DNA of 64,000 nucleotides. Source: Diplonema japonicum (Eukaryota > Protista > Euglenozoa: Diplonemea). A program made the position numbers and the translations under genes. Position 1 is the first letter of the stretch. The number at the start of each line of letters is the position of its first letter. Shown piece after piece: positions 8,418 to 51,807 of this stretch. The DNA is taken from positions 186,001 to 250,000 of the forward strand of contig OZ025665.1 of the NCBI GenBank assembly GCA_964019335.1, written 5' to 3'. The notes under the pieces were generated by a model, which made no database searches, was not told the origin of the DNA, and saw nothing but the letters and a program-made list of their open reading frames with translations.

Positions 8418-8449
<32 letters not shown>

Positions 8450-9010
8450 ACGTCTGTCGCTTTTGTTTGCTTGTGTCCACTAGCGATATTGTTTCGGCAC
8501 GGGAGGTGTCAACCTCAGAAAAAAAGAAAAGAAATCTGTATAAAATCAAGAAACAACATCAGAGAATAATCTTTGGTACTGACAATATTACCATTGTCAA
8601 TACAAAAAAAAAATCTGATAAAATCTTGTAGAAAATGAAAACCGCAAGCAGCCTTAAAAATAAATAAAATCACTGTTGAAAATAGCTGTTCGTCTTTTTT
8701 CTTTTTTTCTTTTTTTTTTTGAGACTCGTCCCTTCCTCCCACCGGCGACTGTCTTTTCCTTTTTTTTCCCTTTTTTTTTCCCCGTTCTTATAAAAAGAGA
8801 AAGAAAAAAAAAAGGGTAGAACCATACTTTTCTACAGGTTTTGCTTCTGCAGTAGGAATAACTGGAAAAAAAAAAAAAAAAAAAAAAATTGTATCAAGAC
8901 AGTAATTCCACCTGAGCCACCTCTAAGGGAAAGAGGCAGAGGGCAAAATATCTCGGGGTAAGGGGGAATCTCTCTTCTCTCTCTCTCCCTGCCATTCCAT
9001 TCTCTTTTCT

Positions 9011-9046
<36 letters not shown>

Positions 9047-12924: not shown

Positions 12925-13360
12925 ATACTATGGGAAGGGTAGACACTGTTGTGTTATGTGTGTATAGATCAAGATGGACGGGGGGGGAGGGGGAAAAAAA
13001 TACAATGAACCCTCTTTTTTTTTCCCCCACTCATTTTTTTGAGGGGGGGTTGTACAACAATATTTAGAGAAAAAAAAAGCAAAAGGAAAGAAAAAAGCAT
13101 GGCAAGATGCTTTGGACGTAGTAAAGAGGGGAAGGGGGGGGGGGGGGGGGGGCTGTATTGTGGAGAAACAAACTGCGGGGGAAAATTGAAGAAAATTAAT
13201 CCACAAGGAATGAAAGGTAAGGCAACAAAAAAAATGGATGATGGGGGGTGAGGGAAAAGATGAAACAGGAAATAGGGTGAATGTCTATAATTTCACAGAA
13301 AAGAAAAAAAAAAACATCTAAAACGTGTGCCAAAAAAAGGGGGGGGATGGGGAAAACCAA

Positions 13361-16300
13361 TTAATTGGCCGTAATTGCTTTGTCAGCCAAAGCCCTTGTC
13401 CGTACCCACCGTCTTTTTCTGCAGACATGCGAGAACTTTTCTTTTCGAGGATGCCAGGTTTTCCCAGTGAATTCAGATGCGTACACCCAACCCTCATGGT
13501 CAGTCTCTCTGCTTTTAAAAACCTTCCATTCGGCCTCCCATACCCACCCTGTAGGGAGGTGGAAGGACTGTTTAGGAGTGGCACGCTGTAGGCCTACGTC
13601 GGCCCATCCAGGAGGGTCCTTTGCTCCAAGGTTGGACGAGGCGAAGGTCTTGACGACGGTCTTCTTCTCGCATTCCCAACATTCTTCAACGACCATCTCG
13701 TGGCTGCTGATGATGGAAGGCATTCCTGTCTGTGGATTCTCGGTGCTGACAAGCCTAACTACACCTGTCAACCTGCCTCCTGCAGAGATCCCTGAACGGA
13801 AGAGGTTGATGCAGAAGGAAGCACGCCCATCCGTCGACAGAAGGACGTCCTTTACAGGCAGAACCCCTGACGCGTAGTAGTCGGACTTCCACCCGTCAGA
13901 TGAATGCGACAACACAGCCGGGCGGCCGTCTCTGGTTGTCTCGTTTCGTACTGAGAACAACAGGTACTGCCGTTCAAGGAACACCCTGCTGTTCGTGTTC
14001 GGCTGGATCTCAGGGAAGCTCGATGTCGTAGGGAGCTTCGTGTTCTCGTCCGCCGCCATTGTTCCTGATCTGTACAACCCTTCTGCGAAGTCTGCATAGA
14101 TGGTTAGATAAGGCTTCGCAAGCCCGCCCTTGCCGCCTAGGTCGTAGTCTTCGTCACGGCTGGCGTCTGTGTTGCTTGACACGATTGACCGCCGCCTCCC
14201 TCCAGCGGACCCCACAGACCCTGTCGAGGACATGATGCTTCCCTTCCGCTTCAAGCCCCCGCCTGCGCTGTCCCCCATTCTCGACGCGCCTCTCAGACGA
14301 GATGTAAACGTCTCTCGCTCCACAGTACGGCACTCAAGCATGCACGACTCCAGCATGAAGCTGACCTTCGGCGGGATCGGACTGGCGAAGGTTTCCAAGT
14401 GAACCAGTTGTGACCCGAAGTCATAGAGCGACGCTACAGCAGGCCGGCCCTGTGCGTGAAAAAAAAATTATATAAAAACGTGTTTTCTTTTTTAGAATTT
14501 TGTTTCCATACATTCGCCACGTTTACCGCTTTGTAAAAGATGTTCTCCAGCTCCATCCCTGGGAGGGACCTGCACAGAACACGCTGCTCTAACCCGTACT
14601 CATGGAACTCTTCGACCAGCTCTAAATCGCCTTCTACGAAGTTCGCAAGAGCCTCGCCTGCATTGACCTCCCTTGACAGTACGTCGGTGCCGATTTCCAA
14701 GCTGCTGAGCCTGTCCCATTTCCTAACGTCCTCAGGGTACCCGTCGTACCCGTAGGCAAGGCTGCCCAATGCGAATATGTGGTGGAACCTCACTGAGATG
14801 TCAACACACGACAGACCCGCTTGCACCCTGCCTAGCAGATCCTTCAGGATATCGTTGCGCACCTAATGGTGTTGGGAGGGAAAGAGAAAGGAATACCTTT
14901 TCGTCGTCTTCCTCTTCGATGGGCGGTACGACCTTGGTGCAGAAGAAGCACAGAGGTGTCTCGTTCACAGAGAAGCTGATGGCAACGGCATCGGTGACGC
15001 CCTTAGTGCCCCCCGGCTTGCCTCTAATGTGCTGCCCTGTCCACGCGTCGGTGTTTGAGATCTTCCTGTGGCTGTTGCTGAGCATGACCAAGGCCACGCC
15101 ACGCTTGCCTTGCTCCCTCTCCGTCGAGATGAGAGGCTTGTACTCATCGCCAAGATAGCGTGTCTGATGTTAGTGGTTTTCTTATTTTATTCTATTTCAT
15201 ACCAACATGTCACACAGCCTAGTCCCACCCTGGTACTCTGCCGGAAGGTCCACGAACCCTACCACGTACAGGTCTACACCTGTCTTGGGAAGCCAGTTAC
15301 CAAAGTCGACCTCTTTTGGCAGCTTCGCGAGCTGCAAGTTGATGCACCCCACCCACAGCCTCAGCTGGTCACATGGAACATTGCTGCACTTTATCTTCGC
15401 AAGACCGGAAAGGTTCTGCTTCCCTCCGACTGTTGTCTTCGCCTGTGTCGAACCCTTGATGTTCACGTTGAAACAATGGGGCCCAGCAATGTCCGGGCAC
15501 AGCGTTGGTGCCCACACCAGCCCGTTCCGAAGCGCCTTGGTGCACTCATAGAACCTCTCACGCGTGATGGAGCTCTCAAAGATAAGCTCGTACTCTTTCT
15601 GTTGCTTGAAGAACTTCATCTTAACCTTCCTCATGTTCATGGTGTCTTTTTCGCACCTGTAGATCTGATTGTATGAGAAGACCGTAGGTTGCTTCCCGTC
15701 TTTCCCGCCAGACTTCGCCGCAAGAAGCGTCTCCTCAGGTGTCTTGCATGGTGCGAGGTTAGTGAAGGTACGGTCAAAGAAGTCGAGCAGCCACACCCTG
15801 TCGCGCTTGGCCACGAGCTTGGTTTCGGTGTTCAGTTTCTGCACGTTGAACAGGGCTTTGAGGTACTCTGGCGACGATAGGCTGTTCATCTCAATGTTGT
15901 GTGCCAAGGGGTTCCTCTCTTCGTCAGCGAAGGACTGAAGAGGAATAACCTCCTCTTCCTCTTCTTCTTCTTCTTCTTCTTCTTCTTCTTCCTCCTCACC
16001 TATCTTCCCTTTCCCCTTAGTTAAGAAGTCCTCTGGGAGCGGCATCACCTCGTTGTCCATTGTGCGGAAGCCCTCAGGTCCCAGCACAGGGTCGTGCTCT
16101 GAGGAGCCTGCGTACAAGAGGTACTCTTGCCCAGGTTCCAACATCGTGACATCGAAGGAACCTTCGCCTTCACGGACCTTCTTGCTTCCCACTTGCGAGA
16201 ATTCAGGTTTCCCCCCCTTCTCAACCCATTCCTGCAGTTCAGCGAATGTCACGTTCTCTGTCCCCTCAGGCACGACACACCACAGCATTGTGCCATTACG

Positions 16301-19300
16301 CGACGCGCAGTACTCCACAGCAGTCGAGTCCTCAGTGGGAGAGACCACCTGTAGCCACCTCAACATGTGGCCTTCCGTCTTGAACGTACTAAGCATGGGC
16401 TCTTCGCCCTTTACAATGGCTGTAACTGTGTAACACGTGTCTGGTTCTAGCCCGCTTGAAGTGATCTCAACTGTCTCTCGCTCATCTGCCTCAACAAGCT
16501 TCCCAAATGCTAGCACAGCGTCTTTGTCTATGACCTTCTGTTCTCCTTCCTTCAGAACGTAGTTTGCACTGCCGCGACGGGAGAAGTTGAATTCAAGAGT
16601 TGCAGCAATAGGAGTGACATCAGAGACAGTCACTGACTCCAAGAGGAGCCCTTCAGGGGTTGTGTGGAAGCGTGTCTGCTCGGATGTTACCCATGGGATG
16701 TCTTCGTCAGCAGGCGCATCAGGTGAGATTGCTGCGATCTGCAGTGTGTAGTCAGTGTCATCAGTAAGGTCATCAAACGTGAAGCCACCATCACCACCGC
16801 GGATCCTGCACTCCTTCACTTCGCCCACCTGCTCGTCCCCGAGCACCACCCTGCACAGTACCACTCCATCTTTCCCATCGGCGGAAGTCACTGTCACCTC
16901 TGCGCTGCGTGTCTTGCTTGACACGTCGACCTTCCCTAGCTGGACCCCAGGTCGCATGGGTGTGGTGAATGCCTTTTGCTGTCGTCCGTCTTCGTCCGGC
17001 ATGCAACGTACTGCACTCGTCACGACGTGCAGCGTGTACTTACTGGCAGGCTGCATCCTCACCGAGTTCGCAGTGAATTCTATCGTCTCTGTACCCTCTA
17101 CATCCATCTCGCCGGAAGCGAGTACCTTTGCTGTGCCAGGCACCAAGCTGGACCCTCTCCTTCTGTGCTGCTCTCTGTGCTTTCCTGGCAACGTCACAAA
17201 CGCCGCAAGGGGCACTTCATCGCTTTCACTTGTCACCGCCCAGTGTAGCTTTCCCTCCCCTTTTACGTTCACCTCCACATCGCAGCTTGTCGCACTCCTG
17301 GGGTCCACACTGATGTCCAGCACCTCAGGTGCGGGCAACTTCACCACCAAAGGAACCTTAACTAGCGTGTTGCTTGGTGAGGTGAACGCTTCAGTTTGCT
17401 CGCCAATGATGTCCGTCATCAAGAAGGCTGTGAACTGCACCCCCGTGCTTGGTGTAGGACACTCAATCTCACAGACAGGGTCCTCGGTGGCCACATCAGT
17501 GCTGATCAACACAGCTTCTCTGAAAGCTTCAGTCGTGATATCCTCAGCATCGCTTTGCACAGCAACGTGGATCTTTCCCTTGTGTGACAAGCGCACTTTG
17601 AGAGTTGCAGAGTCCACCGTGTTGCCACACTGCTCTGCAGACAGGATGGTGGGGGCCGTGTAAAGGGGCACACCCTCGACGGTGGTGACGATGTTAGATG
17701 TGCATTTGCCATCAGCAGTGGCGGGTAGCACGCACAGCTCGTAGCGTGTGCCCGGCTCGAGTCCTTTAGCTACAATGGTTGATGTAGTGCTGTCCTGTAA
17801 CAGCATCCCGCAAGCATCGAAGTCGGTGCTCACAAGCAACTCTTTGGGTGTCACGGGTGTGGAGTGGTCCTTGCACGCACGCACTGCCCAGTGCAGCCTG
17901 CCCAATTGTCCTTTTGTATTCACCTCAGTGGTCAGCCCATGGTTTACTTCTCGCAAATTCATGCTTGCCACGACAGGTGCAGCTGCTAGTGCTTCGAAGT
18001 CCACTCTCAGCCTGTCCCCGTCGCATCCCTCAGTAGCTAGCAGTACGGTGTATCTCTTTCCCTGATTGTTGTGTCGATTGTTTTTGTTTCAGCATACCTC
18101 GTGCAGTCCATCCAGTTTGATACATGTCTGTGGGCCCTGTAGTTCCACAAGATCTCCTTTCATGAGTTCTTCCTTCGTAGGCAGCTGTGTTCAATAGTTA
18201 ACTTTAACAAAGCATACCAGCTCGTCAGAAGGCTTGACGACGTATCGAATGGCGCCACTGGCAGGCCCCTCTGGGGTCACCACTATATCTGCTGAACTTG
18301 TGGTGATATTCGTAGCTTGGGCTGTCCTCAGCTTCCCAAGTTCTTGCGACGTTGTGAAGGCGACAGTCTTAGGGTATACGGTAGGGCTGATGTCGGCCTC
18401 CGTGCTCGCAGGCACATGGTGCAGGACATATGCTGTGTCAGGTGTCAGGTTAGTTGCCTTGAACGTGTTCCTGAAGAGGGTGTCAACAAGCCCTGCGCCC
18501 GAGGCAACGATGTTCTCTGTAGCAACACCTAGTGCTGCTGCCTTAACGTCTTCTGCCTCTAGTTCCAGACCACTAGGAGTCATACACCACAGAAGCCTGC
18601 CCCCCTTCTTGGAGGAAAATCCAAATTCTGCAGTCGTTTGTGCTATGGCAAGAACATCCACTGTGCACGCATCAGGGGTGTCCAGCGTGTGAACCCTATT
18701 CTTTACAACACCTCCCGCCACCCCAGCCACCGAGCACGGCCACGTGTACACATCTAGCTCCATGCCAGACGGCAGCCCAGTCACTACCAGCATCTGGCCC
18801 TCGCCAGGCATGCCGTAGCTGTCCTCGCCGCGTGCCACACAACTGCTTTTCATGTCCAACTCTATCTTGCTGTGGTCCCTGAACTCTGTTTGGAAATCAG
18901 CAGGAACGACCAAATACTTCAGAACGCCTGCTGAGGTCAGCTCATATTCTAGCCTGATCTCTGAAGTACCCACCCTTCCCTTAGCTAGGTTTACGATCTC
19001 CGGTGCAGGCAACAGCGTGGTGAAAGTCTCTACAATCATCGGCTCATCGATGGCGTGGTCCTCTTCTGTCCTTCCGCACAATACCAGTGTGTACTCCGTC
19101 ATACCCGTCAAGCCGTCGATGTGCAGCATCTGTCCTGAACCGGGGACAAGACCTGCGACACCAGTTCTGATGTACCCCTGTGCTGTGGTGGTGCCGTCTG
19201 CTTCTAGCGACGCCACAAGAGAAGCTACGTCTGACTCCACAACACTCTTCACAGCTTGCTTCACACCCCAGAACAGCAAACCCTTCCCGTTCGCTTGGTA

Positions 19301-22300
19301 TGTCATCACCGCACTGTGGTCACACACATCCAGATTAATGTCTTCGATGCTTGGGACTTGTGATATGGGTGCCGTAAAGGGAAGCACACACTGGTGCCCA
19401 GCTGCATGAATCACTTCTGCAGTAGTGCGAACGTCTTTGTGATGTGGCACTAGGTGGAGAATGTGGTCCTCTTCACAAACAAGCATAGAGGCCTCTATTG
19501 TGTACGTGTTAGTGCCTGCAGACGCGTGCAACTCCCCTACTTTCAGTGCCTCACTAGTACCGCCGCACACGACAGTAATGACCTCTGGGTCGCGTGAGGG
19601 AGAAGTTAGATGCACCGGGCGGATGGCCCTCTTGGTGTCCTCGAAAGCAACCAGCAGTGTGTTCTCTGTCTGGTCAGTACCACACACATGACCCACAGTA
19701 CCGTTCAAGGAGTCATCGTCGTGGCCACACACCTGTACCTCTGAGCCCATTGGGAAAGCTTCGACAGGTGTCGGCAGAGCAACCAAGTTCGCAGGCTTCA
19801 AAGCCCTGCTGCCTTCTGCAAACCTGACCATAATGCGGTCCTGGGGTACTTCCTGAGTTGGGAAATCGATCTTTCCGACTTTGCCGTTCAGCACGGCAGA
19901 CCCCATAAGGCCTCTGGCCTCCACGCTGGTTCCGATTGCAAATGCGTAATTGGGGGGCGGCCACTCACATTTACGATTCCTAATTAAGTACTTTACCGTC
20001 ACTTCCTCCTTAGAAGTTATCTCGACGGCAACCGTGGACGCTGTTATAGATTTGATCATGCACTGCACAGACGGCTGCACAGGGCGCAGCATGAAGGGAA
20101 CTTCTCTCGTGTCTACAGGCTTCCCCGTGAGAGTGTCTTCCAGTGTCACATAGGCCAGCATTTGGCCCCCTGCAGATGGGAGACTGTGCACATGAAGTGA
20201 AGAGGGAAGGCCTGGTAGAGTGCGTGATGAAGAAGTGCAAGGCTCGGCAACTCTAGCCATCTCGATTGTCTTTTCTGGTGTCAGTTTCGGAATCGACTTC
20301 ACATTGTGTGCCACAACACAGTGCACGATGCAAGGGACGTCGTCCACTGTGACCTCCACGCGGCACCCCCTGGGCTCTGTCTGGACAGTGCACAGGCTGA
20401 TGCTTGCCTGCAGAGCGCTAGGTATAGCGACATCCTTTACAACACACAGGCCTCCATTCGACAAGTCTTTGCTCTTCGTAGTGTTGACCAATACCACATC
20501 TACGGTGCCCTCCAAGTCTTCTATCGGACCAGAACGAAGCGGACCGGGACCATGCGGCGGTCCCCAACTCCCGCTGAAGATCACAGCCGCATGGCCGTCC
20601 ACGTTGTGTCCAACGATGTCGCCTTGCCCAGCAGCAACAACCGCGTAGTGCACAGCGTGTTCAGGTTCCCATGCCGCGCCCTTTGAAAGTGTTACCTGCA
20701 AAGCAGGTCCGCTACTGCCATAGTCTCTGACCATTTGCACTTTAACAGCGGGGAACGGTAGCAGTGCTTGAACACCAATAACTCTGGAGGTGATCACTTC
20801 CTTGTTTCTCTCCCCCACAGCCACGACGCAGTACCTCTTGCCGTTCCGCAGCGACGGGAGGTGCACATCGTATTTTTCAGTCTTCTCCACGAGGTACACC
20901 TGCTCACGTGGCACGTCAAGGGTCTCGCCGTCAATCGCTACGAGCACGTCGTTGCCCTTGAAGCCCGCCACGACGCCTTCGATGTGCTCGATGTCGTCGT
21001 CGGTGACAAGCACACTGGCACCCTCTCTGATGCCGTGCAGGTCGATGACGCCGCTGAGTACGGCTTCCGACACTCCCAGAGCTACGTCAGAGGGCGTGTA
21101 GCGCTTCGTGTCTGCGTCCTCGTGCAATTCCACAAGCATCCAGGCAACGCTGCCGATTCCAGATGCGTAGACCTCAGCTCTGTCCTTATCCTCGGTCACT
21201 ACTACTGCCACAGCGTTCGGCAGCGTGCCTTGCAACACACGGGACTTCAACGAAGCAGCGCGACTAGTAGCTTCCTGCGACACGGTACGCATCTCCGATT
21301 TCTTGGTCTCTTCCAACACATCGAGGTCCTCTTGCTGTGTCTTGATTGTGGCTTCCAGCACGGCCTGATTCTCGGTCAGTTGCTGCACTTCTCTGTCTTG
21401 CTCCTTGATCTGCTTCTCGAGAGCCTCCTTTTCATTGAGCAGCTCCTCTTGTATGTTCATGAGCTCTTCTTGGTGCTCCTCTGCCTCTTTCACTTTGTTC
21501 TCCATGGTCGCGACGTACTCAGATGCCTCATCGAGTCCCTTTGCAGTCTCCTCTTGGGTGCTTCGTGCAAGGCCCAGCTCTTCTTTGTACTGCTTCACAA
21601 GCTCTTGGGAGTTGCGGAGGTCCTCTTCGAGTTGCTCTTTCTCACCTTCGAGGTCATCTACAATTTTGTTCTGTTCTTCGAAGGCTGCCTTTGAGGCTTG
21701 TAGCTCTTTCACTTGTGTCCCGAGCTCGGTGGCCAGATCTGAGGAGCGTTTCTTGGTAGCTTCCTGAGAAGTTCGTAGCTCAAGCAGCTCCTCTTCAGCA
21801 TGTGCAAGATCAACACTTTTCTCCTTGATCACGTCGTCGTTCTCTTCAATCACCTGTGTGAGGGTAATTGCCTTGTTCTGCAGTTCTTCCGCTTTTTGCT
21901 CAAGTGTTTCGATCTTTCTTGCGTAGGCTACGCTTTCGTCACTCTGCTGAGACTCCAGCAATTCTTTGTTCTCCATCAGCTTGGTTCTCTCTTCTTTCAG
22001 CTTTTGGAGCTCTTCCTGCAAGCGCTGTTCCCTCTCAGCAGTTTCCTCCAACTCCTTTTTATGAATCGCTTTCGCCTCCTCCAGTTGTTTCTCTGCCTCC
22101 GACAGACTTTCACGTGCCTTTGCCAATGAGTCGACCTCTTCCTGCAAAATCTTCTCCCTGGCTGCAGAGTCCTCCAGAGCTTTGTCACGGGATTCCAGCT
22201 CTGCCTTGTGGGCTGCCTTTGATTCTTCAAGCTTCTCCTCTGTTGTAGACAACTCCTTTTTGGCCTTCTCTAGAGTACTGATCTCTTCCTGCAAAAGTTG

Positions 22301-34300: not shown

Positions 34301-37300
34301 CGCGCCTTTCTCCAGATCGCCAGCTGCGAGTTGAGAAGCGGCCACTACCGCAGCCTCGCTAGCTTGTGCAAGAAGACTGCGCTGGTCTGCAGCATTCCTG
34401 AGGTGTGAACCAACCGTAGTCAATGCATCTGAAGCTTCCTGCGTGTTCTTCTGGAGCAACGCCTCTGCAGCAGTTTTTAAGCAGCTTTGGCCGTGCATGA
34501 GGTCACCGTACCCAACTGCATTCTGGCTTATGTTGGTTGCGATCACTTTTAAGTCTTTCGTGAGCAAAGTAACTTGCCTGTTGGCAGATGGCTGGATGAC
34601 GCCTCCTAACCCCACCTGCTCACCGAGACTCTCACTAGCTGCGGCAACGTCTCTCATCGTCTCAACAAGCGATTCAAGACCACATCCACCAGCTTCCTCT
34701 GCTGCTGTAGCACATTGTTTGGCTTCCTTTATTGCAGCGGGTACGTCGCCGCGTCCTGCGAGACCAGCTGCATTCTTTGCGCTGTTAGAGATGTGGTGCA
34801 GTGTCTCAAAAAGCGGCCCCGGTAGGCTGTCGCCAGCGTTCTTTGCGGCGTTCGCCACATTGGCTGCAGACTGTTGCATGTCACCCTGAGATCCCAGGCC
34901 CATTCTCCAAGCCAGTTCCTCGGCACTGCCTGCCATCAGTCTGACCTCCTCTAGAGCACCGACTATCTTCATGGCCTCGCTCTGTGCTTTAGTAGAACAC
35001 GACGCGCCACCCTTGCGTAGTTCAGTAAGAACACGCTCAAACGGCTGCCCCATGCGGGGGAATCTCTTCACGTAGTTTTCAACTTCCTTGATAGCAAGCT
35101 CGGGGGGTTCATTCCCAATGGTGGCAACGAGGTCAAGCGCTGCTTGCTCCGCGACTCCAGCACCCAGCCCCGCTGCAACACAGGCTTCCTGACGCAGTTG
35201 CTTTACTTCATCAGCACTCACAACGTGCCCTTCTGCAAGCCTGCGCTGAAGACCTGCTAAAGAAGTGAGCAACTGGGCGGTTTTATTTCCTACCTTACGC
35301 GCCGCCGCCGCAGATGACCGTGCCACCGCCGTGTCGATCACATCGTTGGCAGCATCAAGGTTGTTGGACACAAGGCTGGAGGCCGCCGCAGCGACTAATG
35401 TTGCAGTGTCAGTAGCTCCGTATGCACGAAGCTGAGATGACAGAGCGGTGAGGTCTGTGTGTGCAGCTTGCATGGCGGCACTATCACCTTGTTCAACCGT
35501 AGCTAGTAGTTCTTTTGCGCGAAGCGCAGCAGCAGCGGCAACAGTAGTCAAGTCATCGCCTTCAGAGCCACGCAGCCCCGACTGAAGCGTGTTTCTGGCT
35601 GCAGTGGGCATCTGCTGATGCATTAAGGCATCTTTGATACAGCAGGTCAGCTCTGCAGCTGTGGAACCGTGTGCGAGTGCTTCTTGAAGCACTTCTTTCA
35701 CGTCCTCAGGGAGCGCCGGATGGCACAGTGCAGAGCGGATAGACTCTACAAGATTCTCCCTTTTCATTGCATCCTGCACAGCATCAGCAACATCACCAGG
35801 CAGGCCCTCCATGGCAACATGATTCGTAACACCCATCAGCTTTGTGTAACTCTCGTCTAGGTCTTGCAAAGCAACAGCGACATCGTGCTTCACGCTGTCG
35901 GGCACTTCGGGATCCTGGAAGATTATATGGGCGTATTCACGCAGCCCAGACGGAGTTCCCTCAACCTTTGCCTGCGGGAAGTGCTTAGCAAGACTACCTT
36001 GTAGCCTTGTAATACTATCGTCTACCTGCTCTACCCCGGCACGTAGGGCACCTTGCGTGCTAGCATTCAGATCGGGGTGCCTCAGGATAGTTTTCACAGT
36101 ACTCACTAAGTCATGCGACACCATTGGCGGTTTCTGCATCTCGAGCTTCTCTGCGAGCGCTACAAGCACGCCACTGATCTCAGGGTGTTGCAGTGCCAGC
36201 AAGCGTGCGTGGCCGGCCAGCTCCGCAAGGCTCTCATCGCTCTCATCCGTCATGTTTTCAACTCTGCGCGATAGTGCTTCCAGCGCTACCACAGGGTTTG
36301 TGACTTCACGCGTCATGTTTGCAATGTTGATGAGTTCTTCGGGTCGGGGCTCGATACCCTGCAGCAGCCTGCTAGCAAGCTCATCAATCTGCTTGCTAGC
36401 AGCAGTCAAGCCCACCCTTGCCTCAGGGTGTCGCACAGCAGCTTCAGCAATGGCGGAGGCAACAGCATGGAGCTCCTTTGGAGTGACCTCCTCGCCAGCC
36501 GCCCTACGTGCCGCAAGGGATTCCAACACCCCGGAGAGCTCCTCAGCTGCTGATTTCGCGTCCCGAACAGGCAAGCCCGCTGCCTTCGCCGCCTCGTCCC
36601 TCAAGCGCCCGATCTCAGCCGCACTTACGGCCTCTCCTCGTGCCGCCCGTGCCGCTGCAGCGCTCAGGCTCGCCCCGATAGCGGCAAGAGTCGTGCCGCA
36701 GTCGCCAGGTGCCTTGCTAGCTGCAGCTAAAGCACGTCCTGCAAGCTCTCCGAGCTCCTCGGAGTTTGGAGCTTCCCCTGCTGCTGCACGCGACTCAGTT
36801 CCCCACAGTGCGTTGGTTATCGCACGAGACCCTGCGGCAGCAGTGGCCGCGCCTTCGCATGCTTCTCTTGCCCTTTCAAGGAGGTCTTTTGCCCCCTCTG
36901 GGTCGTTGCTGTCTATGTCCTTCAGCATTTTCATCACACCTGACAGCCCCGATCCCACAAGACCAGGGTCTCTTGAGAGGGTTTTGGCCATGGCAATACT
37001 TCCCACCAATTGCGTGTTCTCTGCTTCGCTCAAAGTCCCTTTGAGCGCCAGTGCTTCTTCGAGCATGCGAAGCTTCTCAGCAAGGGCAAGAGTATTTGCT
37101 TCTGCAGTGGATGGACCTGCACCTGCAGCGTTCTTTGCACCCTGCAACGCTTGATCAAGTGCCGGAGCCAATGCCGTAGGATCGTCACCTCGCTGCTGAC
37201 ACCGCTTCAGACAGTTCAGTTGCTCTGCGATGATGAGTGCAGCTGCCTCGTCGCTCTTGGGTTCACCAGCCAACCCGCTGAAAGTGTCTACAAGATCAGC

Positions 37301-40300
37301 GGCGGAGGCGGCAAGGTCAGATGTCTGCATGGGGTCTTTAAGAATAGCAGTCCTTAGCGTCTGCAGTGTCTTGATGTTGTCAGAAAGAAAGGGCGCTAAG
37401 TGCTGGCTAGCCATTGGCACATCTGCAAGAGCATTTTCAATCGCCTCCAATGCACCGTTAGCGTCCTTAGAACCTAGCAAGCCAGAAGCTTCCTTCAGAG
37501 AAGCTGCCGCTTTCGAGATGCCCGCTATGCCTTCTGCTGCGTTCCACGCAGAGGCACCCGCCGCGGCAGCATATTTAGCAACGTCTCTTCCCGTCTTGCC
37601 TTGCTGTAGTTCACGGCGAAGATTCTGCAACTCGTTAGTGCTCCTCTTCAAACCTTCTGCAAGAATGCTTTCTGCGGGAGTCATGTCGCCAAGAGACTGT
37701 GCCTCGTCAGCTAACACACTGACCTGGTGCATCAGGGAATTCAAATCGGTCTTCGCAGAGATGGTGATCCGGCCACTTAGCTCAGCACAGGCATCGGACA
37801 GGCTCTTCGTCGCTTCAATAGCTCCTTGGAGACCGCAGCCCGCTGCGTTGCTGACGATGCCGGCCGCTTCCAGCATTTCACGTGTTGCCGCTACCCTGTT
37901 CCCTCTGAGCAGCTGGTCCACACATCTTGCAACTGTAGTCGATGCTGTATCTAACTTCTGCTGCAAGATGTCTGCTTCGCATTTGTCTCGCAGCTCTTGC
38001 ATCAATACCGCCACCTTCCTAGCCGCTGCGACGGACTCTGCAGTTGTCTCACCCATTCCAATCTTTCTAGCCACATGGTGCGCGTCAAGGGACAGAAGCC
38101 GCACGTCTTCTACATTTCCAGCACCACGCTTTGCTTCTAGTGCTGCGCCTGGCATGTCTCCAGAAGCTAGCAATGACACAACCTTCCCAAGCTGTGGTGC
38201 GACCTCCTCGTGCCTCCTTGCTGAGATGGAAGCCTCATCAATCAGGCCGTGTGTGTCGCTGCCGTCGGACTTCACACATCTTGTGGCAATGCGCTCAGCT
38301 GCGATTTCTGAAGGCCCTACGCCCAACCCTGCAAGATGGCTGGCCTCATCGAGCATTGCCTTCAGTTCATCATCAGTAGGTGCGTCACCCTTCTGAAGCC
38401 TGTGCTGCAATACCGCGAAACCTTGCATAAGAGCGCCCAAACGGGGTGCTTTGGATGAGTCCTGCGACGCATTTGCTGCTGAAACAGCTGTTGCTGCTTG
38501 GAGTGCAGCTATGGCACCTGCTTCGTTTCCGGCCAATAACCTGCGGTGTGCTTCCTCAACCATTTCAGCTGTCTGCACTGATCCACCCAGACGGAGGTTT
38601 TGTGCAAACTTTTCGAGCTTCGCAGGAGTAACGCGTTCCCCTTTCTTCATCTGCATAACAATTTCAGCAAGCTGTGCAGCTGCGGCAGCATCAATAGGCT
38701 GGCTTTGGAAAGCGTTGTAGTTCTGTAAAGACTCTGCAAGGAGCTTCTTAACGGCATGGGGCAGCATAGGGTGCCTCTGCGCAGTCCGCACGGTGTCTGC
38801 CAAGTCTTGCCCGTCGGACTCGACTTGACGGAGTTTCAACAGCTTAGCTTCAACTGCAACCATCTCGTCCTCTGGGATCATAGACCGCAGCTCTTCTTTC
38901 AACTTGTCGATCTCGTCCTTCATGTCCTGAGACACGACGGCTTCTACTTGCAAGTTAGTTTGCAGCTCGATAACGCGCTGCTTGAGTTCTTCGTTTTCCT
39001 TCCGAGGAAGGTTCACAGCTAACGCGGCCTCCTTTAACTGCTCTTGCAGCATCGAGATCTCCAACTGTGCCTCCTCAAGCTCCTCTGTCTTTGACTTGTG
39101 CTCGATTGGGCTGGGAACGCCTGCCAGCTGTCTGGCATCCTGCACACACGACGCTAGAAACCCAGTAGGGTTAGGTACGCCATGTGACAGCTGCGTGTGT
39201 AGCCTTTCCGCGATCATGCGGGCGGCACATTGCTCAGCACCAGGTGCTCCTAATTGCATGGCAAGATCCTCGAGCACGGCTGCCACGGGCTGCACGGCGT
39301 CCCGTGCCGTCTGCGCATCGACTATCGTTTCAGGAAGTCCCTTAAGACGCTCTGCAAGTTCAGGCGGTGCAGAAGCTAGAAGGTCATGCAGCAGCGCAAC
39401 ACTGCAAGCAGAATCACCCACGTTGAGGATCTCGATGAGCTCGTTAAGAACCGATACCTGCTTCTCCAGTTCACTATGCTCCTGTATGGCCTTGAGGGCT
39501 GCTTGTCCTGCACGCTTCACAGCGGTCGATGCAGAAGTCTCGTTCCCTTGTTTCAGCTGGGTAGCGGCGTACTGCAACTCCTTCATCGCCCATTTCATGC
39601 CAGACGACAGAACGGAGTCAGGGGTTACAATTTGCCCAACAGCAGTGACCTCAGCAAGTAGTCCATCGACAAGAGGCGCACTAACCTCCGCAGATTCGCA
39701 CACCACAGCTACACGACGTGCAGTCTCGAGGGCTGCAGCAGCACCACAACCGGCTGCCGCCTCCGTTGTTGCAGAAGCACAGTTTGCCACCGAAATGGCT
39801 GCGGCGCGCTCTCCATTTGCAGCAAGATCAATAGCCCGCTGAAGATTTGCTGCAGAAGCAAGAAGGCACTCCTTGACAGGTACAGCCTCTACTCGTTCAG
39901 CAGCACCTTTAACAGCACCGGCTGCTTTTGCAAGTAAGCGCACTGCCTCAGTGCTGCCTTCGCCTTGAGCAAGTCTACGAACAGCCTCGAGAGTCTCCAC
40001 AGCAGCTAATCGCGACTCTTCAAGCCCTGTTGTTGCTCGAGCTACCTCCGCAGAGGCACCAGCAGCAGCGGCCTGCATGCTGGCACCTGCCGTATCGAAT
40101 GACGTCAGCAAGTCAGTCGCCCTACTGAGTGCACCGTTCACCTCGGGGTGTCTGGACCCTACTGCTGCCAGCTCTTTGATGAGCATCTTGCTGTCTGCAC
40201 TTGATGGGTTCTTCTCTGCTACTGACGAGCACCAGTTAACGATTCTGAGTGCAGCGCTTTCAGGGCCACCTGATCCCAGGCACCCCACACGGCATGCTTC

Positions 40301-43300
40301 GTCTCGCAACCCTCGCAATTCGTCTTCAGAAATGTGTTCACCCCGCTCCATTCTCTTGTGTAAATATTGCAAGGAGTTCAGTAACCTTGCCATCGGTTGC
40401 TCATCAGTGCCATGCGTTAGGAGCGCTTGGTTAACAGCTTCGCGCAGCTCAGCTGGTATGTCCTGCCTCCTGAGCATGCCCTTGAGGATCTCAGTGAGTT
40501 GCGCGATGCTCCCACCAGACTTCCCTAGTACAATGGCTGCGTCAAGTGCGTGCAGTTTGTCTTCAGGAAGCCTTACGCATTTCTGCTTTGCATCTTCCAG
40601 CATCTTGATCAACCCTTTGCTTTCAGACAACACTACATCGCGCGGCTTCTTTCCCTTGACCCAGTTGGCCGCTGCTCTCAATGCGCCCTTTAGCTTTGGG
40701 TGCTCCGCTGCAAGTGACTCTGCTCTGTTCACGAGAGCCAGTACCTCGACTTCGTCGTCGCTGCCCACCGTTTCAAGGTTCGCCGACAAAGTTTCCAAAG
40801 CACGGAGGGGGTTCACCACACTCTTAATGTCACACGCAATGGAGTGAAGTGCACCAGGCTGCAGACCGTTCTTCACAGCTTCCGCAAGTTTCCCAGCGCA
40901 TATCTTCAACCCTTCACTCGCCTCAGGGTGTCGCACAGCAGCTTCAGCAATGGCGGAGGCAACAGCATGGAGCTCCTTTGGAGTGACCTCCTCGCCAGCC
41001 GCCCTACGTGCCGCAAGGGATTCCAACACCCCGGAGAGCTCCTCAGCTGCTGATTTCGCGTCCCGAACAGGCAAGCCAGCTGCCTTCGCCGCCTCGTCCC
41101 TCAAGCGCCCGATCTCAGCCGCACTTACGGCCTCTCCTCGTGCCGCCCGTGCCGCTGCAGCGATCAATTCAGTAGCAACAGAACAACCACCCTCGCCAGC
41201 CGCCTGTGCACGCTCTGCAAGTTGCCCAAGCTCATCAGCACCAGGTGCCTCCCTTGCCGCAACGCGAGATTCGATTCCCCATAAAGAGTTTGCAATGGCA
41301 CGCATTCCGGCTGCAGAAGCCGCAGCTGCCTCGCACGACTGTCGTAGATCTGCAATTTGTGCTTTTGGTGAACTAGTTGTCAGGTTGTCAATGCCCTTCT
41401 TGATGCCGATCATTGCTTTTCCCACAAGACCAGGCTGTGTCGCAAGCTGCGACGCTACAACTGCTGCTTGCTGGATGCCAGCAGCAGATGGTGTTTCCTC
41501 AAGAAGCTCCAAATGACGCGCAAGAGCAAGCGCACCACTTTCAGCGCTGGACAGCTTGTTACATTCGTTGAGGAAAGGCAGCTGCTGAGTTGAAAGTAAT
41601 GCCTTCTCGCAAAGTGCTGCCATTTGTTCGGGCTTGATGTTGTTTTGTGCTAGGCCGTTAATGAGGCCTGAGAGCTGGCTGGCAATGACACGTGCTGCCA
41701 TCTCATCTGGGGCCAGCTGCGAACCCGCAAGGTTGATGAGGCTGTCGAGGCATTCAGATACCTCAGGTTCTGTGACGCCACAGAACAAGGCCTTACTTGA
41801 CAAATCATTCAGCTTCTTGGAACAGTCGTTGAGCGCAGTGCCCAGCTCACCAGGGATATCTGTGGTCACCGTCTCTGCTGCTCGGAGCAACAAGGTGGCT
41901 GTCTGCTGTGGGTCGGTTGTCTGAGACAACGCTTCTTTTACAACCTCGGCAGCACGTGAAGCAGCCAGCTGGCCTTCCGCACCGGACCGTGCCGACGCGC
42001 CTGCCCCGCCGAAGATCACAACTGCCTCGCCAGCATCGCCAGCAGCAAGAGCCTCAATTGCGCTCTTGAGCCTTTTAGAACAGTCCAAGAGACCTATCGC
42101 TGTGGCGCTTCCCGAGTGCACCGCGTTCAGTGCTGTTGACTCACTCTCGTGTGCAAGTTTTTCGGCGGCAGATATAAGACTCGCACTTTCCTCACCGCCG
42201 CCAGCCCTGCTGAGCAGTGAAGCACAGGAAGTTGCAATCAGTAGTGCCGTTTCGGCAACTGCCTTGGGCCCACACCCCGATGCTTGCTCAACAGCTTCCG
42301 CAGCATAGTTCGTTTCGTTGGTGCACCCAGCTACGTCATTTTCGTCAACAAGTGAAAGCACTCTGTCCAGCGCCGCTGCCGCTGTGCTCAATAAGTTCCT
42401 CGTACCAGGTGCCTCTGATCGGTTCCTTGCTGCCCTGATAGCTCCCGCGGCTTTCGCCGACTCAGCCATTGTTTCAGGGCTATAGTTTTCCAGTCCAATC
42501 TTCCTTGCCGTTTCGTACGTTTCCAAGGCAGTGATTCGGTTGCTCGCCATGTTTGTGGATATGCACTGAGCCTCGCCGACAGCTGAAAGGACATCTGCGC
42601 TATTCTTCGAGCGTGAGGCTGCTTGCAAGAGCGACGCGACACGTGTCAGGGCAGCTGCCATCTCGGGGTACCGTTTCCCTGCAGCAATTGCATCGTTGGC
42701 CGTGTTCTGTATAGCTGCGGAGTCGGCTCCATCAGCAAGCTTGCGGCACTGCAGAGCCAAGTCTTCAGCCGCGGTTTCAGCAGCACTGGCACCCAGCTTT
42801 CCAATCGTGCATGCCATGTTCCTCAAGCTTTTAACGTCTTCCACAGACACAGTGTCGCCGGCAGCGGCCTGGCGTTGCAGCTTCGATACTGCAGAAACCA
42901 GAGTGGAGTATGTATTCGTAGCCTTTACAACTGGGACGCTAACATCAGGACTGAAAGCGATCTGAGACACTTCCTCTTCGATGCTGCCGTCGAGACCCTC
43001 GCTTAAAAACGCTATGCAGTGGTGGCCGTCATTCATATCCATGCACGTAGGAAGGCTCATTTCTTGCGCAACGCCTTCCTTGACCACCACACTGCCGATA
43101 CCGATCGTGTTGCCCTTAGGGGGGGCCTGCATGATTTCAATCATCTCGCTGGACGTTCGCGGGGCGTGTTCACTGCGTCCCTTCGTGACACAATAATGTA
43201 GTCGTCCGGTGCCCTGGCAGTCAATGGCGACGCGCAGGTCACGGCTTTTAGCGCTTTGAACTTTCATTCGCATATGAGGGGGGTCCCTCTCGGACTCGGG

Positions 43301-45685
43301 TGCCATAGACTTATCGCGAGGGGGCGACATAGACATCGAGAAAAGTGACCTTGGAGGCTCAGTTGCCACCCCTGTCTCAGTGGTGGCATGCTGTTCAGAG
43401 CCCACGCAAGCGTCTTTGGAAGGTGCTCTGGGGATGCTGTGACTTGGGCTTCGGCCCTGGCTCTGCGCTCCTGGAAGGCTGAGATGCCTTGGCATGCTAG
43501 GGCTGTGTGGCTGAGGTGGACGGGGGAGTGAAGACGATGCGTAGACTGTGTCAGGTGATGCTGTAGAGGCAAGGGTCACAGTCTTGAGCGGTGATGGGAT
43601 GTTGGCAGGCGGCGAGGCAGCGCGGTTGGGCACCTGTGTGGGCTCGTCTACGTCGAACTCGTCGGCAACATTAGAATCAGTGTCAAGGTCGTGGGGGAAG
43701 GATGGGATGTGAATGTCGGGTACTTTCTCTTCGAACTGCGCAAACGAGTGGTTGTCCAAATCAGAAAGAAGCTTCGACTGCAGCCCCTTAAGCTCTTGTT
43801 GGTATCTAGAAGCACGTTCCAGATGCTGTCTTGCCTGTTGTTTCTCTTCCTCAACCTTGGCACGATCGGCCCCTCTGTAAGAGCGCGACTCTAGCTCTTG
43901 AAGCTTCTCGAGCATCATCCTTGACGTACGCTGCGCCTCAGCAAGAGCCCTCTCCACACCCTGCTCCTGCTGTTCGGTGTTGTCAATGACGGCGTTGAAC
44001 CTGTTCACCATCCCCTGCTGTACGTTGCGCTTCTCGAACTGCTGGTCCTCTAACTGCTTCATCTTACTTGTCCTCTGCTGGTACGTAGCTAGCTCTTCTA
44101 ACTCGTCGTTCAAAAGTGCCCTTAGCTGGTCTCGCTGCCACTCAGTCAGGGAGGGGTCCTCTAGAGCCCTTCTTAGCACACCCACCCTCTGCTCTACGCT
44201 GGGCTCAGGTGTTGCAAAGGTGATAAGGCTGCACACATCCTTTGCTACTTCCGCGAAGCGAAGTGTATGCTTGGTTTCCTTGAAGCAAGAAACGTGTGGG
44301 CTGACAGTTGCAATGAGCACCGTTTTGCAGTTGCCACCAAGTGAGTTGATGAGGACTTTTGTTAGTGTGGAATCACGGAAAGGGATGGTGAGATCGGAGG
44401 GCTGAGCAAGGCGCTCAAAGACCATCCTGAGAATGGAGAGAGACTTGTTGATCGAGACAGACTCGTCACGCGAGATGCCGTTGGTTCCCTTGCGGAGGTC
44501 CTCGCTGCCTGCGAGGTCTACGAGGGTAAGTGTGGAGCGGGAGAAACGCGTTTCCTCCTGCTGATCTTCGGGTAATAGAGCATGTTCGTGCCGGCCCAGG
44601 GGGAAAGGCGCCTTTCCGAAGACAGTTGTGAGCTGCAACAGGACTATGCAGTGAGACTTGCTAGAGGCATCAACAGAGGGGTCGGTGACGCGAATGGTGC
44701 GGCGTCTGGTGCCCTCGTGGATGGCAGCATGGAAAGCGCTGGTAGTGGTCACTGCACGCCATTGAAGCCCTGCGATGTTGGCTTGCCGCTGCTCACCGAA
44801 AGGCGACTGCATTGTTTGGATGGCGACTTGCATGAGGCGCGGCTCAGAGCCTGGCTTGAGAAGATCGTAAACATCGTTCATGTAGACCTCTAGCATAGCC
44901 ACCTCGAGGAACATCTTGCGGTGCCGATTGCTGGAATTCTGCTGCTCAACCTTTGTGATGAGTGCATCGGCGAGTCTGGGGACGAGCCCGATCTTGCTGT
45001 CATCGAAAGTCTTTTTGCGTTCGGGGCCGAACATGGTGTAGGTCTTCCCACTACGCATCTGCCCGTAGGCGATTGCAGTGTAGTTGTACCCGTCGATGAC
45101 CATGTCGGGGGCGTCAGCGACGCTGTTGTAGATGTCCTGCTGCGAGGCGTACTTGGCACCTGTTCGTGAACGTTCGGACGCACTCCAGAACGATTTATCG
45201 ACGCAGTACGACCGGTAGCTGGAGGCGAGGGAAGAGGCGGACTGAGAGGCGGGGTTGCAAATTGTCACTGCACCATCATTCTCCTCTGAGTACATCTTGA
45301 TCGTGGGGGGCATAGGCGGCTGCCGTGCCTCGTATGGCAGCAACGGTCTAGCCCGCACCCATACCTGCACACCAACCTTGTTCATGTGCATCAATGGTGT
45401 CAGTGCACCCTGCGCTGCCATCATCCCGAACTGAGCCCCAGCTGACCGTGCTTTTTTCTTGCTCTTCGGACTCGGCCACATCATCCCTGACGTCGATTCC
45501 ATACTCTCCAAGTCAAGTCTCTTTACAACTTCTTCCGGTGCTCCTCTTAGCACAGCTGCTCCCTTCACACCCCATCCCGCTCCATCACTGCCTAACTGCC
45601 TCACCTTACCTGCATTCCCTACAGACTTCTGATAAGGCATATCCTCCCCTGGCAGCACTGGGTACCTTCCCTTCCGTGCGGCCAT
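13361..45685 (-). CDS. Giant ~10,706-aa multidomain kinesin; exons 45685-18218, 18184-18098, 18061-15203, 15163-14897, 14862-14512, 14449-13361
   Basis: The 9164-aa ORF ends just after a CTG|GTATGC donor. Five GT-AG introns (33, 36, 39, 34, 62 nt) join it in frame through a 29-aa micro-exon to the 935-, 98-, 142- and 345-aa ORFs. Exon lengths are 9156+29+953+89+117+362 aa. Confidence 0.8.
13390..14120 (-). other. C2-like domain (~13740-14120) and C-terminal DysF/Pex24-type domain (~13390-13700)
   Basis: KPYLTIY...QYLLFSVR...YASGVLPV...GRLTGVVRL, then EECWECEK...WAD...LPTGWVWEAEW...TDHEGWVYASEF...RKRRWVRTR (diagnostic DysF pattern). Confidence 0.8.
14450..14511 (-). other. 62-nt phase-0 intron (giant kinesin)
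   Basis: AAT|GTATGG...GCACAG|GGC. AT-rich, and joins two out-of-frame ORFs. Confidence 0.85.
14863..14896 (-). other. 34-nt phase-0 intron (giant kinesin)
   Basis: AAG|GTATTC...CATTAG|GTG joins two out-of-frame ORFs. Confidence 0.85.
15164..15202 (-). other. 39-nt phase-0 intron (giant kinesin)
   Basis: TTG|GTATGA...CACTAACATCAG|ACA, with a branch-point-like ACTAAC. Confidence 0.85.
15950..15998 (-). repeat. (GAA/GAG)n microsatellite encoding a ~16-residue poly-Glu linker
   Basis: (TTC)n on the + strand, between the FN3 array and the PH domain. Confidence 0.9.
18062..18097 (-). other. 36-nt phase-0 intron (giant kinesin)
   Basis: GAG|GTATGCTGA...AATCAG|GGA. Removal restores the FN3 motif DGLHE|GKRYTV. 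Confidence 0.85.
18185..18217 (-). other. 33-nt phase-0 intron (giant kinesin)
   Basis: CTG|GTATGC...ACACAG|CTG. Contains the TGA that ends the 9164-aa ORF. Confidence 0.8.
21290..25800 (-). other. ~1500-aa Glu/Lys-rich coiled coil, including 49-aa tandem repeats at ~22060-22680
   Basis: Heptad-rich, Pro-poor sequence. The unit AEKQLE.A...HK.EL..K..TLE.A..KE..LQEE...LEK.K..L repeats about 4 times. Confidence 0.85.
25900..42900 (-). repeat. Six diverged copies of a very large Ala/Leu-rich helical repeat in the giant protein
   Basis: The motif L...L..LQ.R...G..V...E...L...A...AGLG.G..E.AA recurs at about 42900, 40380, 38430, 35270, 32050 and 28000. Confidence 0.8.
33261..33808. repeat. ~548-bp intragenic repeat, apparently identical to 36420-36967; its first ~243 bp recur at 40920-41162 with one mismatch seen against 36420-36662
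   Basis: Direct comparison by eye. Offsets are 3159 and 4500 nt, both multiples of 3. Shadow-frame ORF translations are also identical. Confidence 0.9.
44230..45375 (-). other. Kinesin motor domain (kinesin-3-like)
   Basis: VQVWVRARP, DKSFWS...YASQQDIY (kinesin-3-type loop), AYGQMRSGKTYTM, LEVYMNDVYDLL, SSKSH, LVDLAGSE, INKSL, IPFRDSTLT, SLGGNCKT, ET.HTLRFA. Confidence 0.92.
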
Positions 45686-51762: not shown

Positions 51763-51807
51763 GAAAGTGCTTGATGGTATTCACTGTTTGAGGACGGAGG
51801 GGGAAGG

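Follow-up and report, generated by a model that had tools for sequence, protein, structure and literature searches.

A giant diplonemid kinesin with a pseudo-phosphatase tail: an extreme variant within a euglenozoan kinesin family

Introduction

Kinesin-3 motors, such as KIF1A/Unc104 with its PH domain and KIF16B with its PX domain, join an N-terminal motor to a C-terminal domain of lipid type, and the same general plan is found in a giant gene of Diplonema japonicum (Euglenozoa: Diplonemea) that we describe here. The gene lies on the minus strand of a stretch of 64,000 nucleotides (nt) of contig OZ025665.1 (positions 186,001 to 250,000; assembly GCA_964019335.1, 62.5 Mb in 132 contigs), which in its full length is called the window below, and the exon-by-exon sum of its six exons gives a product of 10,706 amino acids (aa) and ~1.149 MDa. 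To our knowledge, this is the largest kinesin known. Despite the common plan, the giant differs from kinesin-3 in several respects, as the FHA domain and the lysine-rich loop 12 of that family are both missing, its PH-like domain belongs to a different family and the protein is about six times larger. Additionally, its tail, unlike those of kinesin-3, consists of a whole putative pseudo-enzyme followed by C2 and DysF domains.

The order of a PH-like domain, a 5-phosphatase fold and a C2 domain is shared with SHIP1 and SHIP2 and with the PH_29-type inositol 5-phosphatases of Euglenozoa (for instance, P0025 of Entosiphon). In SHIP1 and SHIP2 the C2 domain is packed directly after the phosphatase domain, and Foldseek comparisons indicate that the giant is alike in this. 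By contrast with SHIP1/2, most of its catalytic residues have been replaced, no SH2 match was obtained by Pfam in any of the six exons, a DysF domain has been added and the whole is fused to a motor. The DysF domains of dysferlin, myoferlin and TECPR1 match that of the giant in both sequence and fold, although the latter is single and non-nested, stands at the very C-terminal end of a motor protein and is accompanied by neither the C2 arrays nor the transmembrane helix of ferlins. Finally, talin, vinculin, spectraplakins and titin likewise place chains of four-helix bundles or beta sandwiches between two binding ends, but they have no sequence homology to the giant, resemble it only in generic fold and carry no kinesin motor.

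The same order of motor, PH_29 domain, 5-phosphatase homologue with lost catalytic motifs, C2-like domain and DysF/Pex24p domain is found in kinetoplastid proteins annotated as “Unc104-like kinesins” (EKF33674.1 of T. cruzi marinkellei, XP_029240935.1 of T. rangeli and those of Papus and Cryptobia). However, these proteins measure 1,300-1,500 aa as against 10,706 aa, their coiled coil is short where the giant has ~5,700 aa of bundles, 1,500 aa of coiled coil and ~15 FN3-like domains, and their motor motifs are canonical while those of the giant diverge. Literature searches gave no publication that deals with a giant kinesin, with the trypanosomatid Unc104-like kinesins or with DysF in a kinesin. 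An earlier note on this DNA had known of no described kinesin of this architecture, and this is only partly so, as the kinetoplastid kinesins share the order of the tail by common origin and the largest gene of D. papillatum had been reported with a kinesin motor before (see below); no published description was found of either the short or the giant form. What is new here is an extreme giant variant within an existing, uncharacterised family of euglenozoan kinesins.

A giant gene with a kinesin motor has likewise been reported in another diplonemid. In fact, the largest gene of D. papillatum, DIPPA_22195, spans 186 kb, contains 20 introns and encodes a kinesin motor domain (PMC10161547). The gene studied here is compact by comparison (32 kb, with five micro-introns), and the identity of DIPPA_22195 with the D. 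papillatum model P0002, which is discussed below, could not be verified.

A single gene of six exons

The list of open reading frames (ORFs) shows a minus-strand frame of 9,164 codons at 45685..18191, which starts with an ATG at 45685..45683. Its last eight codons and the TGA that closes it (18193..18191) fall within the GT..AG interval 18217..18185, and the long frame that follows the second intron appears in the same list as the ORF 15197..18004. With five micro-introns taken out, the gene consists of six exons (Table 1), all of which proved divisible by three in length and free of stops in a frame check. Tests of homology and structure were run on each exon or on natural orthologue sequences.

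Contigs from four public runs (X1, X2, X3 and X7) were aligned on 13300..18400. Those of X3 and X7 (organism C) show no difference from the window, retain all the intervals and behave as DNA of the source organism; an assembly artefact was rejected, because two DNA-type data sets carry the identical sequence. The other two runs come from relatives that are 95-99% identical. One X1 contig (organism A) skips 15164..15202 and 14863..14896, and an X2 contig (organism B) skips 14450..14511, so that introns 3, 4 and 5 are confirmed by spliced contigs of near-identical relatives. All five in-frame micro-introns of the earlier note are kept, the third and fourth exactly as drawn, but the X2 contig moves the donor of intron 5 (GTATGG) from 14526 to 14511. 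As a consequence, the intron measures 62 nt instead of 77 nt and exon 5 is five residues longer; the five extra residues are also present in the D. ambulator orthologue. When the window is compared with the contigs of organism A, 33 of the 40 listed differences are synonymous and 7 are non-synonymous (synonymous: 4 of 4 in exon 4 and 16 of 18 in exon 6), which points to purifying selection on the proposed frames.

Additional evidence comes from P0004, a 49% identical, 2,012-aa ORF of a Diplonema ambulator Trinity transcript in EukProt that was found by an exhaustive HMMER search with exon 3 as the query. The matches of all six exons to this ORF, each aligned singly, abut without gap or overlap (Table 1). 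The FN3 array and the whole tail also lie in a single transcript ORF in Lacrimia lanifica (2,625 aa) and in Namystynia karyoxenos (3,558 aa), and a 1,767-aa ORF from ENA likewise joins them.

The main alternative for the structure of the locus is a pair of genes, in which a kinesin-rod protein would end at the TGA at 18191 and a separate trans-spliced mRNA would encode an FN3/PH/phosphatase-like/DysF protein. Retention of intron 1 does lead to the stop at 18191, the contigs of the RNA-type runs do not span 18217..18062, and euglenozoan genes are polycistronic and trans-spliced (PMC10161547). Nevertheless, the D. ambulator transcript ORF crosses both junctions in exact register, the first in-frame ATG past intron 2 falls inside a domain, and introns 1 and 2 follow the GTATG..AG pattern that is also seen in the three introns confirmed by contigs. 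Moreover, a single FN3-like domain is distributed over three exons. In a 116-position FN3-like profile that combines the beta-domain repeats of the gene with the orthologous ones, positions 3-38 are matched by the final 38 residues of exon 1, 63-81 by exon 2 and 83-115 by the first 29 residues of exon 3, although the profile contains the orthologous split domain and the match of exon 2 is therefore not fully independent. The FN3 motif that the earlier note saw rebuilt over the second junction is thereby recovered, with P0004 in register. As the register of P0004 and the split domain leave little room for two genes, we consider that alternative extremely improbable. The six exons encode one 10,706-residue diplonemid protein, in agreement with the single polypeptide of ~10,700 aa previously proposed.

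The tail: PH_29, phosphatase-like, C2 and DysF domains

The tail begins in exon 3 with a PH-like domain of the PH_29 family (Table 1). Many of the HMMER matches of this exon combine PH_29 with a true 5-phosphatase domain placed after it; for instance, in P0025 of Entosiphon the PH_29 domain stands before a catalytic domain that is recognised as PF22669 (E 1.4e-51). Pfam found no phosphatase domain on any single exon of the giant, and exon 3 gave no match when compared with PDB sequences. A profile was then built from 23 true PH_29-type 5-phosphatases, P0025 included, and exons 3 to 6 match this enzyme profile in colinear order (Table 1). Additionally, the orthologue P0004 aligns to P0025 along the catalytic domain, over three quarters of its length (E 6e-37). 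These alignments trace the tail module back to inositol 5-phosphatases of the PH_29 type.

The catalytic motifs have not been maintained. GDLNYR is changed to GSLAYG, HLAA to TKVV and DRIL to QRVL, and the last histidine motif (SxH) reads ANG and is interrupted by intron 5. Among the catalytic residues only the first Asn is retained, while Glu is replaced by Asp. Because the motifs are replaced, the protein is not classed as a 5-phosphatase enzyme, and the sequence of the domain suggests a pseudo-enzyme at best. This also affects the phosphoinositide-defined membrane to which the tail had been assigned: the 5-phosphatase ancestry favours such a membrane, but most of the catalytic motifs are replaced and, the domain being at best a pseudo-enzyme, the assignment is inferred from ancestry.

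An AF2 model of exon 6 (12 orthologues, pLDDT 71) starts with the strands that complete the phosphatase fold and continues with a disordered Ser/Gly/Arg linker, a C2 domain and a DysF domain; the end of the phosphatase-like domain was placed from the AF2 strands at aa 28-44. In Foldseek searches, the C2 fold matches the Ptase-C2 structures of SHIP2 (5okm, E 4e-5) and SHIP1 (6ibd, E 1.5e-4) as well as other C2 domains, while the Pfam family C2_SHIP1-2_2nd reaches only E 0.11 on this exon. The DysF domain is recognised by sequence (phmmer: inner DysF of dysferlin, 4cah, E 7e-9; DysF of TECPR1, 8p5p, E 1.4e-6) and by fold, as Foldseek aligns it to 8p5p with a target TM of 0.87 and a root-mean-square deviation of 1.5 A over 107 columns and also finds the dysferlin DysF. 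Pfam adds a Pex24p match on this region (E 1.1e-5), and the Trp/Arg-rich motif of the domain is invariant across the orthologues. The order of PH, 5-phosphatase-like, C2 and DysF domains claimed for this tail is consequently upheld by the PH_29 match (E 2e-24), the colinear enzyme profile and the SHIP-type C2 and DysF folds.

The motor domain

The kinesin motor at the N-terminus, which the earlier note had recognised, is recovered by Pfam (E 9e-66; Table 1). Among solved structures it comes closest to KIF13B, KIF14 and KIF1A (E 7e-40 to ~2e-33), but the margin between families is small (KIF13B, 7e-40; KIF14, 4e-36; kinesin-1, 2e-34). The Walker A pattern is kept, reading GQMRSGKT where the P-loop consensus is GQTxxGKT/S, and the switch II motif DLAGSE is intact, while switch I reads SSKSH instead of SSRSH (Arg to Lys). 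The same SSKSH is found in the orthologue of D. papillatum, whose P-loop is changed in a similar way (GPMRSGKT).

Membership of kinesin-3 is not established by these comparisons. No FHA domain appeared in a Pfam scan at E up to 0.01, and a motif alignment revealed no lysine-rich loop 12 (K-loop), as the aligned loop, LAQPSDLTIPFRDS, is without a lysine run; furthermore, the motor motifs diverge. Two known proteins were also considered as candidates. Identity with the putative diplonemid CENP-E (DIPPA_27648), whose published description gives other features, could not be shown, and CENP-E (kinesin-7) is absent among the 60 best solved matches listed. Identity with KIN-E of T. brucei (Tb927.5.2410), which is described with importin-alpha-like and calpain-III-like domains, could not be shown either.

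Origin within the Euglenozoa

The closest relatives of the gene are all diplonemids. The nearest is D. ambulator, with about 49-79% identity depending on the exon. At 5,825 aa, the D. papillatum model P0002 is C-terminally incomplete; it comprises the motor and the rod and is colinear with exon 1 over aa 3-5730, with 40% identity overall and 74% in the motor. The giant kinesin is kept across Diplonemidae and Hemistasiidae.

Outside the diplonemids, the kinetoplastid matches of the exon 3 search are annotated as “Unc104-like kinesin” or KIF13 (T. cruzi marinkellei, T. rangeli, Papus and Cryptobia). In Pfam these proteins show Kinesin, PH_29 and a C-terminal Pex24p/DysF domain, and the enzyme profile reveals in them the same dead phosphatase and C-terminal domain, with catalytic motifs that are equally lost. 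A tree was computed for the PH-plus-phosphatase module in a quick search, with a midpoint root and SH-aLRT as the only support. It sets 25 enzyme rows apart from 30 rows of kinesin type, and the branch between the two groups has an SH-aLRT value of 99. The kinesin-type rows comprise the orthologues of the giant (which represent its own module), other diplonemid paralogues and the kinetoplastid kinesin tails. On the basis of this sequence tree, the kinesin-type tails share a common origin, apart from the active enzymes.

Two further kinesins in the same genome help to place the giant. A normal-sized one (G000:C22:250453-255486, locus L001 2453-7486, minus strand) has a canonical motor (Pfam E 7.5e-114), and an ORF with PH_29 lies 480 nt downstream on the same strand. 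This C22 kinesin is probably the gene truly orthologous to the kinetoplastid “Unc104-like kinesin”, and its two ORFs would be separated by one intron or more. Because the genome has this normal-sized copy, we consider the giant a paralogue, not an orthologue, of the kinetoplastid kinesins. The other is a second giant paralogue (G000:C50:484900-497900, loci L002 and L003, minus strand), whose open frame runs for 4,399 aa. Its motor is 38-43% identical to the one studied here, and it has the same Ala/Leu rod repeats at 28-34% identity. No PH tail was found downstream of it, where the next ORF is a 5'-nucleotidase/EF-hand gene. The membrane-tailed kinesin is therefore old in Euglenozoa, and the giant is a diplonemid paralogue with ~8,000 residues added between motor and tail.

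The middle region: bundles, coiled coil and FN3 chain

The middle of the protein was formerly described as a giant rod. A very long helical middle is indeed present, but it is mostly a chain of four-helix bundles, and a true coiled coil is found just in the ~1,500 aa that follow it. The Ala/Leu-rich region (~20% Ala, ~12% Leu and hardly any aromatic residues) extends over ~5,700 aa and consists, according to self-BLAST, of diverged super-repeats with offsets of ~1,050-1,490 aa. Most of the copies are 30-60% identical, but the segments aa 2902-3100 and 3955-4153 (window 32747-37318) are 93% identical in protein sequence. Such similarity indicates a gene conversion or a duplication of recent date within the gene, and the helical array has therefore grown recently; the same pair is also a possible site of assembly collapse or of length polymorphism.

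No Pfam match was obtained for the helical region. An AF2 model of aa 2790-3260, built on an alignment of five paralogous rows, contains helices only, of 15-40 aa each (pLDDT 75). VIA-align compares it to up-and-down four-helix bundles with Z values of 10-11.7 (talin R3, Z 9.9; vinculin tail, Z 8.5), all of which lie below the value of ~13 under which, by the tool's own note, scores are unspecific for helical bundles. Foldseek gave no significant match for this model, and the ESM Atlas held no usable relative of the rod.

The coiled coil, by contrast, is evident from its periodicity. Over ~1,500 aa a 3.5-residue period stands out, with a spectral power of up to 46 times the mean, and the heptad power in a sliding window is high from aa ~6950 to 8100. 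It is followed by an array of ~15 FN3-like domains, according to the profile built from the gene's own repeats, which occupies the end of exon 1 from aa ~8150, exon 2 and residues 1-676 of exon 3. In exon 1, the custom profile matches aa 8776-8896, 8893-9005, 9002-9118 and 9115-9156, the last of these over profile positions 3-38 only, and six further domains lie at aa 27-676 of exon 3. Pfam fn3 is matched in exon 3, with a whole-protein score of 33.8 bits (cut-off 25), yet no individual stretch rises above the threshold. Between the FN3 array and the tail, a TCT repeat (15954-15991) encodes an acidic Glu run.

Short SH3-like inserts of the form LNGxxGxV....V.f......v...NL were also observed in the FN3-like array, within domains or between them (window 19700-21100; exon 1 aa ~8200-8680). 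The N-terminus of the orthologous ORF P0001 has one such insert, at another position, and Pfam gave no identification for them.

A predicted connector between microtubules and membranes

We consider it probable (roughly 70%) that the protein is a long-range microtubule-membrane connector, made by inserting ~8,000 residues into an older membrane-tailed kinesin, a reading that is drawn from the sequence. According to the proposed mechanism, the long heptad segment would dimerise the protein, the motor would hold or walk on microtubules, and the PH/pseudo-phosphatase/C2/DysF end would dock, without hydrolysis, on a membrane rich in acidic lipids, phosphoinositides or sphingolipids. Between the two ends, the bundles, the coiled coil and the FN3 chain would form a flexible and possibly extensible link. 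Textbook dimensions (coiled coil, ~0.15 nm per residue; bundle, ~5 nm; FN3 domain, ~4 nm) would put the length of this link, as a rough estimate, at a few hundred nanometres.

An ordinary vesicle-carrying motor such as Unc104/KIF1A, in which the huge middle would be a stalk or cargo platform and nothing would be tethered or measured, could also account for an N-terminal motor whose nearest solved relatives belong to kinesin-3, for an intact Walker A pattern and switch II, and for a tail of lipid type; besides, the short relatives in kinetoplastids and at C22 resemble normal transport kinesins. This explanation seems unlikely to us. Some 8,000 extra residues that are 40% identical between genera, with super-repeats that are still duplicating, fit poorly with a passive stalk, and switch I (Arg to Lys) and the P-loop are altered. 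Additionally, a copy of normal size, whose motor is canonical, is retained in the genome, which suggests that the giant has taken another role.

The protein might also be a structural scaffold of a microtubule organelle (cytopharynx, pellicle or flagellar pocket), with a tail that binds proteins and a motor that acts as a fixed anchor. Pseudo-enzymes often turn into protein-binding modules, and here most of the catalytic motifs are replaced; the motor motifs diverge, and bundle chains such as talin and vinculin, to which the middle bears a resemblance only, are protein-binding platforms. However, PH-like, C2 and DysF domains typically bind lipids in other proteins, the DysF domain of TECPR1 (entry 8p5p) binds sphingomyelin, and the module has been kept intact and in order from kinetoplastids to diplonemids. 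We regard the scaffold as quite improbable.

Several points nonetheless weigh against the connector. Membrane docking of the tail is a prediction, lipid binding being a property that cannot be read from a sequence, and the pseudo-phosphatase may bind proteins instead of lipids. Motility is uncertain because of the SSKSH of switch I and the unusual P-loop. Regarding the gene model, introns 1 and 2 have comparative support, the contigs of X1 and X2 ending below 16650, and in-frame, stop-free micro-introns may be present within exon 1. The reservations given above for the module tree and for the model and Z values of the helical region apply here as well.

A bolder version of the connector can be offered as a speculation that is rather doubtful as a whole. 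The protein could be a dimeric, force-bearing spring at the half-micrometre scale that couples the microtubule corset or the cytopharynx to a lipid-defined membrane. In such a spring, the dead 5-phosphatase would be a reader of phosphoinositides, unfoldable bundles and FN3 domains would give extensibility, and the number of super-repeats, which is still changing, would set the length.

Features of the gene and its neighbourhood

The coordinates of the exons, introns and domains are collected in Table 1. All the ORFs of the window of at least 380 aa lie on the minus strand, which fits expectation, as euglenozoan genes lie in polycistrons (PMC10161547). One of them, a 1,591-aa ORF at 2291-7066 (minus strand), has strong matches to CFAP65 Ig-like domains (E 1e-89), a flagellar protein. 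At 48730-61569, two neighbouring minus-strand ORFs (3,253 and 1,010 aa), for which Pfam gave no match, may be one further giant gene. The GC content is 0.37 at 8001-10000 and ~0.53 elsewhere in the window.

Table 1. Exons, introns and domains of the giant kinesin gene, with positions in the window. Matches to P0004 are single-exon alignments; residue numbers without an exon refer to exon 1.
Feature	Position	Strand	Size or residues	Evidence and remarks
Exon 1	45685..18218	-	9,156 codons	Translation stop-free; residues 8709-9155 align to P0004 3-452
Intron 1	18217..18185	-	33 nt	GTATGC..CAG; holds the TGA of the ORF at 18193..18191
Exon 2	18184..18098	-	29 codons	Residues 1-29 align to P0004 454-482, 48% identical
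Intron 2	18097..18062	-	36 nt	GTATGC..CAG
Exon 3	18061..15203	-	953 codons	End of split FN3-like domain, six FN3-like domains, Glu run, PH_29, start of phosphatase-like domain; aligns to P0004 483-1443; 689-937 match enzyme profile 19-259, E 9e-50
Intron 3	15202..15164	-	39 nt	GT..AG; X1 spliced contig, joint 15163/15203
Exon 4	15163..14897	-	89 codons	Residues 2-89 align to P0004 1445-1533, 79% identical; matches enzyme profile 276-348, E 1e-6
Intron 4	14896..14863	-	34 nt	GT..AG; X1 spliced contig skips the 34 nt
Exon 5	14862..14512	-	117 codons	117-aa form aligns to P0004 1534-1650, 73% identical over all 117; matches enzyme profile 356-437, E 3e-9
Intron 5	14511..14450	-	62 nt	GTATGG..CAG; X2 spliced contig, joint 14449/14512
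Exon 6	14449..13361	-	362 codons (to 13364) and stop	Aligns to P0004 1651-2012, 66% identical; 111-175 match enzyme profile 537-601, E 1.5e-7
Kinesin motor	45244..44234	-	aa 148-484	Pfam PF00225, E 9.1e-66, 222.5 bits (cut-off 29.3)
Single FN3-like beta domain before the rod	43276..42950	-	aa ~804-912	Own-repeat profile, E 4e-4, weak
Ala/Leu-rich all-helical region	42928..25886	-	aa ~920-6600	Composition, self-BLAST, AF2
Glu/Lys/Leu/Gln-rich heptad coiled coil	25885..21296	-	aa ~6600-8130	Periodicity, composition
Beta-rich FN3-like region	21238..18218	-	aa ~8150-9156	Custom profile; last domain cut by the end of exon 1
PH_29 PH-like domain	15895..15437	-	exon 3 aa 723-875	PF25404, E 1.9e-24
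Inositol 5-phosphatase-like domain	15394..14315	-		Enzyme profile; runs from the end of exon 3 through exons 4 and 5 into exon 6; limits approximate, introns 3-5 inside
C2-type beta sandwich	14152..13742	-	exon 6 aa ~100-236	Foldseek on AF2 model
DysF domain	13696..13388	-	exon 6 aa ~252-354	phmmer, Foldseek, Pfam

Significance

Diplonemids are very abundant flagellates of the ocean, and Paradiplonema papillatum is transformable. If the protein is as it appears, it would be a concrete and taggable candidate for microtubule-membrane coupling in this group, as well as a natural motor fused to an extensible chain of the talin or titin kind. It would also be a case in which an inositol 5-phosphatase was recruited as the pseudo-enzyme tail of a kinesin, within a module that is present in trypanosomatid parasites too. 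Were the spring proposed above to be true, it could underlie diplonemid metaboly, that is, the strong shape changes of these cells, or their feeding movements.

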